A stretch of DNA of 64,000 nucleotides. It comes from Girardia tigrina. Lineage: Eukaryota. The translations under genes and the position numbers were made by a program. Below the pieces are notes generated by a model. That model had not been told where the DNA came from and did no database searches. It worked only from the letters and a program-made list of their open reading frames with translations. Below, piece after piece: positions 45,019-49,383 of this stretch. The stretch's first letter is position 1. Each line of letters starts with the position of its first letter. Where the stretch lies: assembly GCA_001938485.1 (NCBI GenBank), contig MQRK01230304.1:2863-66862 (forward strand). The letters run 5' to 3'.

Positions 45019-48000
45019 TCAAAGTTGAATTAAACGTTGAGCGTTACTTAAATTCATTCTGCAAAAGCTGCACGTTTCTTGGGATCTAAGACATTCACTG
45101 CACAAGATGTGACCACAATCGTTTCTTCTATCGATTAAAGATGTAAAGCAAATTGAACAAATCTTAATTAATTATTAATTAATTAAACTATGTTATTAAC
45201 TTACTGTTCCATACAATTTCATTTTTTCTTTTTCATATATTTCGAAATAACTGTCTTTTTTGCGTAACCGTATGTCGGCCGGAAGTGATGGCACTGCTGT
45301 CGGAAAACATCTTCTTAGTAAATTGTATAAGTAATATATTGTCTTCTTCGTCTTTAGCTAACGTAATAATTAACTATTGTTATTCGCATCAATGATGTAC
45401 TTCATGTAGATCTGATATTACATCCGAGAAATATTGCTCAAATACTTCTTTTTTCTCACAATATTTATTTAAAACCAAATTTTGCAAATTTTTAAGAGAT
45501 ATCGATTTATTTGGTTGTAGAAACTAAAGAAGTTTTATATTGATAATACATTATAAAATTTACCTTTCCCAAATCAAATGATATTATGTTTAAAAATAAT
45601 TTATATTGTTTTTCCTAAAACAAAATATTTCATTATATATAACATAGGGATAATCTTTATACGATGTGCTCAATATCCAAGTTATAATTATTTGTCAACA
45701 ACAATTTAACTATGCCTCCGTCTCCATAACAGATTGCCAAACTCATTGGTGTGTTTCCATTCTAAACATTTTTATATAAATAAAAAAGAAGAAAACCCAT
45801 ACTGAATCAGAGACATTGATATTACATCCTTTTGAGATTAGCAGTTCCGCGCAACCAGCCTCATCGTAGTACTTGATAGCTACATGTATTGGTCGTTGTC
45901 CTTTCTTAATTATTTTTTAATGAATGATACATAATTTAAACATTAAATCATACTAAATTTACAGCTTCATTGTCAATATAATTATGTGATAGTAACAGTT
46001 TAGTCATATCTCTATTTTTATATTTACAGGCTAAATGCAAGAGTGTGTTTCTTTTCTAAAGGAATTATTTATTTATATAATTTATAAGGAAATTGGGAAA
46101 CTTGGTCTCGGACGTTTAGATTACATCCTGTTGAGATTAGTAGTGCCGCGAAATCAATACTGTTATCAATAGTAAATGTTACATGTATTGGCTTCTCTCC
46201 ATTCTGAATTATACCGATATCAATTGTACTTGTTTCTAATATTAGGTGTACAACTAATTAATTTCGTATTTGTTACGAAATAACCTTATATTCGTATTTG
46301 TTATCTCATTTCATATTTGTTACCTCATTTCGAATTTGTTACTAACCTCATATCTATTTATGTAGTCAATAGTCAATTTTATTGAATTTTAGTAAACACA
46401 CAAATTTTTTTTATTACAGTCAAAATGTCAAATTACGTTCCAACAAAACAGCATTTTCGGAGAGGTTTGCTTTTGTTCTTTAATTTAAGGAAAAGTGCAA
46501 CAGAAGCACATCGTTTATTCTCAGAAGCTTATCCTGAATATACTCCAGAGGTTAGAGTATGTCAGCAGTGGTTTGAACGATTTAAAAGTGGCGATTTTGA
46601 CACAGAAGACAAAGAGCGATCAGGTCCATCAAAAAAGTTTGAAGACAAAGAATTGGAGGCANNNNNNNNNNNNNNNNNNNNNNNNNNNNNNNNNNNNNNN
46701 NNNNNNNNNNNNNNNNNNNNNNNNNNNNNNNNNNNNNNNNNNNNNNNNNNNNNNNNNNNNNNNNNNNNNNNNNNNNNNNNNNNNNNNNNNNNNNNNNNNN
46801 NNNNNNNNNNNNNNNNNNNNNNNNNNNNNNNNNNNNNNNNNNNNNNNNNNNNNNNNNNNNNNNNNNNNNNNNNNNNNNNNNNNNNNNNNNNNNNNNNNNN
46901 NNNNNNNNNNNNNNNNNNNNNNNNNNNNNNNNNNNNNNNNNNNNNNNNNNNNNNNNNNNNNNNNNNNNNNNNNNNNNNNNNNNNNNNNNNNNNNNNNNNN
47001 NNNNNNNNNNNNNNNNNNNNNNNNNNNNNNNNNNNNNNNNNNNNNNNNNNNNNNNNNNNNNNNNNNNNNNNNNNNNNNNNNNNNNNNNNNNNNNNNNNNN
47101 NNNNNNNNNNNNNNNNNNNNNNNNNNNNNNNNNNNNNNNNNNNNNNNNNNNNNNNNNNNNNNNNNNNNNNNNNNNNNNNNTCCATCATGACAATGCTCGG
47201 CCACATGTTGCAGTACCGGTCAAAAATTATTTGGAAAATGCCGGATGGGAAATTCTACCTCACCCGCCTTATAGCCCAGACATAGCTCCTTCTTATTACC
47301 ACTTGTTTCGGTCGATGCAGAATCACATTTCTGGAATACGGTTCACCAATGTTGAAGGTATTAAAAAATGGCTTGATGACTTTCTCGGCGCAAAAGATGA
47401 GAAGTTTTTTTGGGATGGAATCCATAAATTGCCTGACAGATGGGAAAAAGGTGCCGCTTCCGATGGACAATATTTTGAATAAAATATTTTTTCACTTTTA
47501 TACTTAAATAAATGGTTTTTTTAACAAAAAAATACGAAATTAATTAGTTGTACACCCAATATATATACAAACCGAATTAGTAGCTTCAATATTGCAATTG
47601 TTTGAAAGTAATAATTTAACGGCACCCATGAATTGGTTAATTAGTGCTGTATGAATCGGTCTGTTTCCATTCTACATGATGAATTAATTGGCAAATAAGT
47701 CAGTGAAATTATTTTTGTAAAAAACCTCATCTTCAGCTTCAATATTACAATCTTTTGAAATAAGATATTTAATAATGGAAAGATTCCTTTGGGTTCTCCA
47801 TTCACAAGCTTCGTGTATCGGTGTATTTCCTGTCTTAAAAATGTCATTAGAAAACAAAAGAAATGATTTGTTTATTACCAAAGTTTTAGCTTCTATTTGA
47901 CAGTTTTTCCAAACAAGTAATCTTAAAACATTTATATTTCCATTGTAACACGCAAGATGTACGGGTCTATAGTTCCACTAAAGGATTGTCAAGAAGAAAT

Positions 48001-49383
48001 AAAAAATAGTTTGAATTTATTACCATAGCTTTAGCTTCGATATCACAATTTTTCGATAAAAGCAATTTTAAAACGTTAATACTGTTACACCTGGCAGCGA
48101 GATGAATCAGTCTGAAACCATTCTATAAATTTTATCAAACTTTTAAGAAAAAAGTTCGTTAATTCATTTACTATATCTTGAATTTCTATATTATTTATTT
48201 TTGATAATATCATTTCAACAATTTCTTTATTATCTTTTTCACATGCTATTCCAATTGCTGTAGTTTCAAGAAACTAATTTGAATTTTAAATTAATTATTT
48301 TAATTAAAGAAAGATTTTACTAAAGATTCTGTTTCAAGTTCACAATTTTTAGATAAAAGTAGTTTTACAATTTCTATTTGACCATTTTTGCAAGCCACGT
48401 GTATTGGTTTTTCGTTGCACTAAATATATTTTTATTTTATTTTCGAATAACGTTAGTCCTCATGTACCATATTCTTCACTTCAATATCACATTCTTTTGA
48501 TAACAATAATTCAACAATCTCTTTTGAGCCATTTCTGTCACAAGCAGCGTGAATCGGTCGTTCTGAAAACTGAATCATTAGTAATTCTGGAAACATTTTT
48601 CAATAAAAATAATACTAAATTTTTTACTTCTAAATTACAATTCTTTGATAATAAGAATTCCACAATATCTTTGCAACCATATGAACAAGCCAAATGAAGG
48701 GGTTTATTTTGAAACTTCAATTGATAATAAAAATTAAATAAGATTGTATTTTTTATCATTAGATACCCCATCAGAAACTTCAAGATCACAATTTTTTGAA
48801 TGCAACAACTTTACAATTTCAATATTTTTCGAAAAACATGCATTGTGTATTGGTTGTTCTCCTTTCTTATTATGCATATATTTAATTTTAGTAAACATAA
48901 ATCATTTAGAAATCTCTCACATTATTTACGACTTGAATATTGGATTTTTTAGATATAAGTAATTTTACAATATCTAAATGTCCATTTCGACACGCCCAAT
49001 GTATTGGTCTACACTTAAACTGAAAATGTTATAAATGTTATTTAAAATTAAAATATTATTTTTATTACATCATCTTCAGCTTCGATGTTGCAATTACGAG
49101 ACAATAATAATTTGACAATTTCCCTATGACCTTCTTTACATGCAAGAGGAAGCGGTGTCTGTAAATTCTAAAAGATATTTATTTAAGTTTAGTTTTTTTA
49201 AAACATAAATTTCGAACATTATCATTAAGTTCCAAATCACAATTGTTTGAAATCAATAACTTTACAATATCCAGTCTCCCTTCCAAACAGGCATTATGAA
49301 TCAGGGGACATTTGTTCTGAAGATGTAATTAATGCATTTTCGTTACCTGATTGACGTTATTTTACTTCATTTTTAACTTCCAT
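45019..49383 (-). CDS. Ankyrin-repeat (16x) plus C-terminal C3HC4 RING protein, putative E3 ubiquitin ligase; about 21 exons, 5' end uncertain (may extend to about 49830)
   Basis: Manual splicing gives 16 consecutive 99-108 nt exons, each one ankyrin repeat (e.g. FKCRPIHWACRNGHLDIVKLLISKKSNIQVVNN), separated by phase-0 GT-AG introns of about 40-55 nt. Three linker exons follow. Last exon 45162-45019: ICSICFTSLIDRRNDCGHILCSECLRSQETCSFCRMNLSNAQRLIQL*. No stops seen. Confidence 0.88.
46242..47559 (+). mobile_element. Mariner inserted in an intron of the ankyrin-RING gene
   Basis: 30-bp TIRs TT(A/G)GGTGTACAACTAATTAATTTCGTATTT, TA TSD. Transposase start MSNYVPTKQHFR and end HDNARPH...YSPDIAPSYY...DGQYFE; middle lies in a gap. 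Confidence 0.95.

Follow-up and report, generated by a model that had tools for sequence, protein, structure and literature searches.

Ligases that join ankyrin repeats to a RING domain, and lineage-specific expansions of the recognition modules of ligases, are both already known. Lineage-expanded families of E3 adapters have been suggested to follow pathogens or other targets that change fast, C-terminal RINGs of the IAP/IDOL type dimerise through their tail and bind UBE2D, and in the vertebrate ankyrins ANK1-3 many 33-residue repeats each occupy one exon, the introns cutting the repeats at an equivalent point, an arrangement that is read as the trace of exon duplication. The plant XB3/XBAT ankyrin-RING ligases comprise 187 proteins in 29 plant species (PMC3596331), and a screen of planarian RING and U-box genes dealt with 393 transcripts and never mentioned ankyrin (PMC8807557); no description of a planarian ankyrin-RING expansion was found in the literature. 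In this work we have analysed a stretch of 64,000 nucleotides (nt) from Girardia tigrina (assembly GCA_001938485.1, contig MQRK01230304.1, positions 2,863 to 66,862; hereafter the window), which carries on its minus strand a series of one-repeat ankyrin exons upstream of a RING exon. We assign a probability of about 0.65 to the reading that this is a structurally intact, single-copy gene of 23 exons for a single-subunit ankyrin-RING E3 ligase of 758 amino acids (aa), an old and diverged member of its family.

Structure of the gene and its product

The gene was traced from its first clear repeat via in-frame GT donors and AG acceptors; searches were made exon by exon, and the joined product was used for frame checks alone. 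The resulting model spans 49665 to 45019 on the minus strand and has 23 exons with 758 codons and no internal stop. Each exon length is a multiple of three, the 22 introns without exception have GT-AG borders and phase 0, and the GC content is 30.6% in exons versus 18.6% in introns. The ankyrin array consists of 16 consecutive exons of 93-108 nt (31-36 aa), one repeat per exon, at 49316-47573 and 46203-45663. These 16 one-repeat exons had been claimed in an earlier note made from the letters of the window, and the claim was upheld, with lengths divisible by three and AG/GT at all borders. The same note had described the introns as phase 0 and about 40-55 nt long; the phase is right throughout, whereas the sizes are 40-58 nt in 21 of the 22 (41-58 nt between repeat exons, the intron between repeats 12 and 13 excepted) and 1369 nt in the remaining one.

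The gene start, formerly placed at 49383, had to be corrected. This codon is an internal Met of a 32-aa exon; the open frame extends 5' of it, and the residues encoded there are kept in 8 paralogous loci, some of them without a Met at this point. The true start lies at 49665, with three more 5' exons that make up an N-terminal part of 69 aa in total. The second half of the third exon resembles half a repeat and is a possible N-cap. Two other readings were discarded during the tracing: a frameshifted first exon with an out-of-frame ATG at about 49580, where the paralogs show a normal internal exon of 33 aa that has an acceptor of its own, and an 'AKDEED...' frame for the penultimate exon, which is without a colinear match in the paralogs. 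Upstream of the gene, no further ankyrin-linked exons were found in the window.

The domain content was established with Pfam. Singly, 14 of the 16 repeat exons reach the cut-off of the Ank model (PF00023), with 21.1-35.1 bits. All eight ligands of the RING are present in the spacing C-x2-C-x10-C-x-H-x2-C-x2-C-x6-C-x2-C and are unchanged across 25 paralogs, and the domain scores 24.6 bits with zf-C3HC4 (cut-off 21) and 26.3 bits with zf-RING_UBOX (cut-off 25.2). The intact C3HC4 RING was therefore described properly before, although it does not follow the array directly, three non-ankyrin exons (17, 41 and 51 aa) intervening. An AlphaFold model, with 25 paralogous RING exons as input, reached a mean predicted local distance difference test (pLDDT) score of 73.3. 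Compared with the RINGs of IDOL, BIRC7, XIAP and cIAP it gave template modelling (TM) scores of 0.70-0.77 and root-mean-square deviations of 1.7-2.0, all 47 residues being superposed. The Foldseek E-values of these matches are merely 0.01-0.05, since the RING is a small domain; the predicted structure is that of a cross-brace RING. A single-sequence fold of the tail and RING of one intronless paralog (L047, see below) had a pLDDT of 42.8 and was uninformative.

On the basis of the domain order, upheld by Pfam on the repeats and on the RING, the gene has the substrate-recruiting E3 architecture that had been suggested for it. If the gene copy is expressed, as we infer, its product would consist of the 69-aa N-terminal part, a solenoid of 16 ankyrin repeats, a family-specific linker of about 110 aa and the C-terminal RING. 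The concave face of the solenoid would bind the substrate, and the short-tailed RING of IAP/IDOL type would probably form a dimer and recruit a UBE2D-like E2 charged with ubiquitin, a mechanism proposed because the RING model resembles the RINGs of IDOL, BIRC7, XIAP and cIAP, which bind UbcH5. The bound protein would thereby be ubiquitinated. The symmetric one-repeat exons are an inherited architecture of the family, which lets the number of repeats drift by exon duplication or loss.

The single long intron, intron 15, owes its size to a mariner element bounded by 33-nt terminal inverted repeats (TIRs; 30/33 identical) and flanked by a TA duplication at either end; the plus-strand open reading frame (ORF) of the element contains the HTH_48 Mos1 domain in its N-terminal part (Pfam, 2e-16). 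Without the mariner the intron would measure about 51 nt, in line with its neighbours. The assembly gap at 46662-47180 lies wholly within the mariner, and since it is confined to this intronic element, the coding frame and the continuity of the gene do not depend on the unread letters. The transposase ORF is open on either side of the gap (46425-46661 and 47183-47482), for which reason the mariner could be of recent origin. Another mariner-like ORF starts at about 58404, adjoining a further gap.

Table 1. Exons of the ankyrin-RING gene and associated features, in positions of the window.
Feature	Position	Strand	Evidence
Exon 1: start codon and 3 codons (MKVF), donor GTATGG	49654..49665	-	Same 4-codon ATG exon in L034, L043, L045 and L050, about 46-50 nt upstream of the next exon
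Exon 2: N-terminal, 33 aa, phase 0/0	49509..49607	-	Motif LCLNY..LS and AG acceptor position shared by paralogs; no Pfam hits
Exon 3: N-terminal, 32 aa, contains ATG 49383	49366..49461	-	Conserved in 8 paralog loci; no Pfam hits
Ankyrin repeat 1, 33 aa	49218..49316	-	Pfam Ank 22.4 bits, Ank_3 25.4 bits
Ankyrin repeat 2, 33 aa	49069..49167	-	Pfam Ank 34.1 bits
Ankyrin repeat 3, 33 aa	48921..49019	-	Pfam Ank 35.1 bits
Ankyrin repeat 4, 33 aa	48767..48865	-	Pfam Ank 21.1 bits, Ank_3 22.9 bits
Ankyrin repeat 5, 33 aa	48616..48714	-	Pfam Ank 32.8 bits
Ankyrin repeat 6, 34 aa	48468..48569	-	Pfam Ank 27.9 bits
Ankyrin repeat 7, 33 aa	48321..48419	-	Pfam Ank 26.5 bits
Ankyrin repeat 8, 34 aa, degenerate	48172..48273	-	Pfam Ank 15.7 bits; same odd type at equal rank in L043, L033 and L031
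Ankyrin repeat 9, 33 aa	48024..48122	-	Pfam Ank 25.7 bits; 67% identity to L043 repeat 9
Ankyrin repeat 10, 33 aa	47879..47977	-	Pfam Ank 22.5 bits
Ankyrin repeat 11, 36 aa, long loop insertion	47726..47833	-	Pfam Ank 28.5 bits; long-loop repeat at equal rank in paralogs
Ankyrin repeat 12, 33 aa	47573..47671	-	Pfam Ank 21.6 bits
Intron 15 (repeats 12/13), 1369 nt as assembled	46204..47572	-	GT..AG borders
Mariner (Mos1-type) in intron 15	46243..47558 (approx.)	+	TIRs, TA flanks, HTH_48 Mos1 domain
Ankyrin repeat 13, 34 aa, degenerate	46102..46203	-	Pfam Ank 14.2 bits; best within-gene match is repeat 15
Ankyrin repeat 14, 31 aa	45963..46055	-	Pfam Ank 26.9 bits
Ankyrin repeat 15, 34 aa	45803..45904	-	Pfam Ank 25.1 bits
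Ankyrin repeat 16, 33 aa, last repeat	45663..45761	-	Pfam Ank 24.3 bits; 70% identity to L043 last repeat
Tail exon 1, 17 aa	45564..45614	-	AG/GT borders; weak colinear paralog matches
Tail exon 2, 41 aa, family-specific	45401..45523	-	41 paralogous loci at E<=0.01; 44-54% identity in paralogs compared; no Pfam hits
Tail exon 3, 51 aa, donor GTAAGT	45205..45357	-	Single frame colinear with paralogs between tail exon 2 and RING; no Pfam hits
Terminal exon: C3HC4 RING, 13-residue tail, stop codon 45021-45019	45019..45162	-	Pfam and invariant ligands
AATAAA, candidate polyadenylation signal 19 nt past the stop	44995..45000	-	Read from the sequence; weak evidence in a genome of 31% GC

The gene family and the history of its repeats

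The exons of the gene were searched against its own genome, an assembly of 1.43 Gb in 255,254 contigs. The RING exon gave 1,225 first-look candidates, and all 150 that were scored have E<2e-5; most of these matches fall within open frames some 47 aa long, the design of the terminal exon here. The first 29 RING loci represent about 17-20 distinct sequences, some contigs being identical, which may be due to assembly redundancy. Tail exon 2 alone detected 41 loci. When 20 loci were extended, 10 proved to carry 8-15 ankyrin exons directly upstream of the RING, with exons of 99 nt and phase-0 introns of 40-55 nt, and the remaining ones were truncated at contig ends or broken by gaps or insertions. 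The loci L031, L033, L034, L043, L045, L046 and L050 share one layout with the gene: a start exon of 4 codons, two N-terminal exons, one-repeat phase-0 exons, three tail exons and a 47-aa RING exon. In L045 (G000:C247285:13000-22900) the N-terminal exon pair (33 aa and 31 aa) is found twice in tandem ahead of the ankyrin array, the two pairs being some 750 nt from each other.

With a profile of the family RINGs the gene of the window scores 78.7 bits, family members scoring 63-83 bits. It is a single-copy gene, as its sole near-identical match in the genome is itself; its best paralogs are 65-66% identical in DNA and colinear over 1.2-1.6 kb, and its best RING paralog is 52% identical. The gene belongs, as an old and diverged member, to a very large family so far seen solely in this genome. 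The expectation of an expanded family was thus confirmed for this genome, with at least 150 scored RING-exon loci, and the recommended count of paralogs and repeats by such searches returned a large family with 12-16 repeats per member.

The symmetric design had also led to the suggestion that the exons are interchangeable cassettes which can be skipped, duplicated or swapped. Every exon is indeed phase 0/0, hence gain or loss of an exon keeps the frame, and this part of the suggestion holds together with the variable repeat number. The interchangeability does not, for the repeats are rank-specific and the homology to paralogs is colinear. Within the gene the repeats are 18-58% identical at the aa level. 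Against L043 the best matches stand on the diagonal, repeats 1, 2, 3, 4, 5, 7, 9, 12 and the last one at 55-70%, and same-rank exons are 69% identical versus 61% off-rank. Additionally, the odd repeats hold their rank across the paralogs: repeat 8 with its degenerate sequence, repeat 9 ('SINV') and repeat 11 with its long loop. Because repeats match the paralogs rank by rank and the homology is colinear, the family grew by duplication of whole genes and not by shuffling of cassettes. Comparison of the loci therefore argues against free shuffling; the symmetric exons have let repeats be gained or lost occasionally over evolutionary time.

One such gain can be recognized in the gene itself. Repeat 13 has its best within-gene match in repeat 15 and vice versa (47% aa, 68% nt identity), repeats 14 and 16 share 61% nt identity, and the pairs 13-14 and 15-16 both align to the final repeat pair of L034 and of L043, for which reason the gene seems to derive from an ancestor with 14 repeats in which a two-repeat unit was duplicated. 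The duplication of repeats 13 and 15 had been noticed before and was taken as recent; the duplicated pair is real, but at these nt identities the event is old. In L034 (G000:C243144:4100-10053, minus strand) two adjacent first-repeat exons are identical in 29/33 aa and separated by a 68-nt intron, which from its sequence is a recent tandem duplication of a single exon.

In a set of 110 repeats of the family, each of 33 aa, variation is greatest at positions 1, 11, 3, 33, 8, 12, 14 and 31. Entropy averages 3.55 bits over the six positions that correspond to those randomised in DARPins (designed ankyrin repeat proteins), versus 1.97 bits elsewhere. The variation was thus correctly located on the binding face, the most variable positions being the canonical ones of that face; however, such variability is usual for any ankyrin family and is alone no proof of diversifying selection. 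The ratio of nonsynonymous to synonymous substitution rates (dN/dS), which had been proposed as a check, gave no sign of positive selection: in L042/L048, the sole close pair of paralogs, with six repeats, it is 0.50 for the face and 0.35 for the scaffold, both below 1, too small a sample to settle the matter. Between the gene and L043 the mismatches are distributed over the three codon positions as 0.32/0.23/0.45 (chi-square p = 8e-11), from which it follows that the reading frame has been under purifying selection since the split from L043; this signal averages over both lineages.

Evidence on splicing comes from the family. At about 8761-9436 (plus strand) of L047 (G000:C242377:10600-20500) lies an intronless, frameshifted copy in which the last two repeats, the tail and the RING are contiguous. 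It lacks exactly the 47-nt GT..AG intron that is found before the RING exon of L049, the exons being 95% identical, and also the 48-nt intron between the last two repeats of L050. By its sequence this copy is a processed retrocopy of a family member; mRNAs of the family are therefore produced in the germ line, and their splicing uses the borders predicted here. The conclusion is valid at the level of the family and has no bearing on the copy in the window. An ORF resembling reverse transcriptase is situated at 8168-8524 of L047, just upstream of the retrocopy. Tail-exon matches also occur in long open frames of 210-469 aa with one TGA, at G000:C12739:8353-8466, C35788:854-967 and C249871:5176-5289; these may be further intronless copies or retrogenes.

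Concerning the surroundings, the gene appears to be set in transposon-rich DNA. A Tc1/IS630-type transposase ORF with a DDE_3 domain (Pfam, 1.9e-16) was detected at 35952-36746 on the plus strand, and ORFs judged by eye from the ORF list as retroelement-like lie at 10960-14489. The window further contains, at 19734-21440 on the minus strand, a single-exon ORF of 568 aa in which C2H2 zinc fingers are combined with a CCHC finger resembling that of BCL11A and with a tail rich in Asn; its best orthologue-like matches are flatworm proteins, one of them full-length at 73% identity, so that by sequence, too, the genome is most likely that of a free-living flatworm.

Alternative explanations and significance

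Several points weigh against an intact and functional ligase gene. Repeats 8 and 13 are degenerate by Pfam Ank (15.7 and 14.2 bits), the N-terminal and tail exons hold no domain recognisable by Pfam (E<=0.01 for the tail exons), E3 activity, choice of E2, dimerisation and substrate are predictions, and a mariner of 1.3 kb in a gene whose introns are normally of 40-58 nt could impair splicing. Among the listed sequencing runs none holds the stretch, and three small ones bearing the label of the same species were checked for RNA and yielded two spurious matches of 18-23 nt, which say nothing on expression. These last points, and the transposon-rich neighbourhood, would also suit a silent or decaying copy, the frame of which is intact by chance and which is unexpressed or mis-spliced, for instance because of the mariner, as a redundant member on its way to a pseudogene; that the family does yield dead copies is evident from the frameshifted L047 retrocopy. 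Nevertheless, 22 GT-AG introns out of 22, 758 codons free of stops and a full set of RING ligands are not what is expected of such a copy, the codon-position pattern speaks for purifying selection since the split from L043 (as an average over both lineages), and intronic transposons are usually tolerated. We consider decay rather unlikely.

The intact-gene reading has to be compared with two further explanations that concern the family as a whole. A combinatorial recognition repertoire, generated by leaving out or exchanging some of the 16 symmetric exons through alternative splicing or recombination, would profit from the frame-neutrality of skipping, from the different repeat numbers of the paralogs together with the fresh exon duplicate in L034, and from the concentration of variability at binding-face positions. 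The low mutual identity of the repeats, their same-rank matches and signatures in paralogs and the colinear DNA over 1.2-1.6 kb contradict it, as does the dN/dS below 1 in the sole close pair; furthermore, the loss of an internal repeat would shift the entire surface of the solenoid. We have accordingly given up this proposal of the earlier note and attach hardly any credence to it. Selfish amplification, by which the members became numerous as or with mobile elements (as retrocopies or transposon cargo) and not from a need of the host, might account for the processed retrocopy and for the long intronless frames on three contigs. Most inspected copies, however, retain all introns and must for this reason have been duplicated as DNA, the translated similarity between paralogs stops upstream at the first coding exons with no shared flanks found, and the RING ligands are strictly conserved, hence this explanation is very improbable.

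What is new in comparison with earlier work is the scale: at least 150 RING-exon loci and possibly many more, a strict one-repeat-per-exon design, and no member detectable in public proteins. For the gene itself the annotation was corrected to 23 exons and 758 aa, the gap was recognized as harmless to the frame, and the idea of interchangeable cassettes was removed. If expressed, the family would be a candidate for a substrate-targeting system, large and diversified, in animals that are studied for regeneration and stem cells, and it would also be a clean natural case of repeat-protein growth by exon duplication. It is tempting, though doubtful at present, to see in the hundreds of ankyrin-RING genes of this flatworm lineage a repertoire for recognition inside the cell, the targets of which might for instance be viruses, symbionts or proteins of transposons. 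If this were true, every member would couple an ankyrin face of its own directly to ubiquitination, and the symmetric one-repeat exons would allow rapid evolution of the length of the surface. The family, of which 1.84 billion public protein representatives apparently contain no member, would then be a branch of innate defence that is private to the lineage and has not been described before.

Comparison with known systems

When the RING profile of the family was run against these public representatives, the best single-domain match had 51 bits, in proteins without ankyrin repeats, some of them giant-virus-like, and a word search of public proteins with the intronless tail and RING of L047 returned nothing, few flatworm proteins being deposited. 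Flatworm proteomes are thinly represented, and therefore this absence speaks only weakly for a restriction to the lineage. The long public proteins matched by the profile included the Mind bomb proteins (MIB1/MIB2), which likewise have an ankyrin block before a C-terminal, short-tailed C3HC4 RING; the third RING of MIB1 is also among the structural matches. Descent from Mind bomb was considered and rejected, since these proteins entered the matches because three weak RING scores add up, each of 24-30 bits, versus 63-83 bits for family members. In addition, the gene is without the MIB/HERC2, ZZ and Mind-bomb SH3-repeat domains (its 69-aa N-terminus has no Pfam hits), it has one RING where MIB proteins have two or three, and MIB is represented by one or two genes per genome, in contrast to hundreds of loci in this family.

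The plant XB3/XBAT proteins share with the gene the N-terminal ankyrin repeats, the C-terminal C3HC4 RING and the design of a single-subunit E3. However, the RING of the gene reaches 18.5 bits on the Pfam model RING_XB3-XBAT31 (PF24921), the cut-off of which is 50, and the plant proteins have fewer repeats and belong to another kingdom; on these grounds the ankyrin-RING architecture probably arose independently in plants and here. The RINGs of IAP proteins and of IDOL (MYLIP) are the best structural matches of our model over its full length including the 13-residue tail, although the sequence identity is about 25% and the gene has neither BIR nor FERM domains.

The lineage-expanded adapters, such as the nematode and plant F-box and MATH-BTB families, fish TRIMs and ASB ankyrin-SOCS proteins, resemble the family in the large, lineage-specific expansion of a recognition module and in variation located on the binding surface. 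The gene differs from them in joining the recognition and the catalytic module on one polypeptide; no SOCS box, F-box or BTB was found in its tail exons (Pfam, E<=0.01), and its C-terminus is the RING, which separates it from the ASB proteins. With vertebrate ANK1-3 it has in common the one-repeat exons and introns placed in the repeat register, but here the register is perfect in 16/16 repeats, the introns are of 40-58 nt, and the design extends to the whole family.

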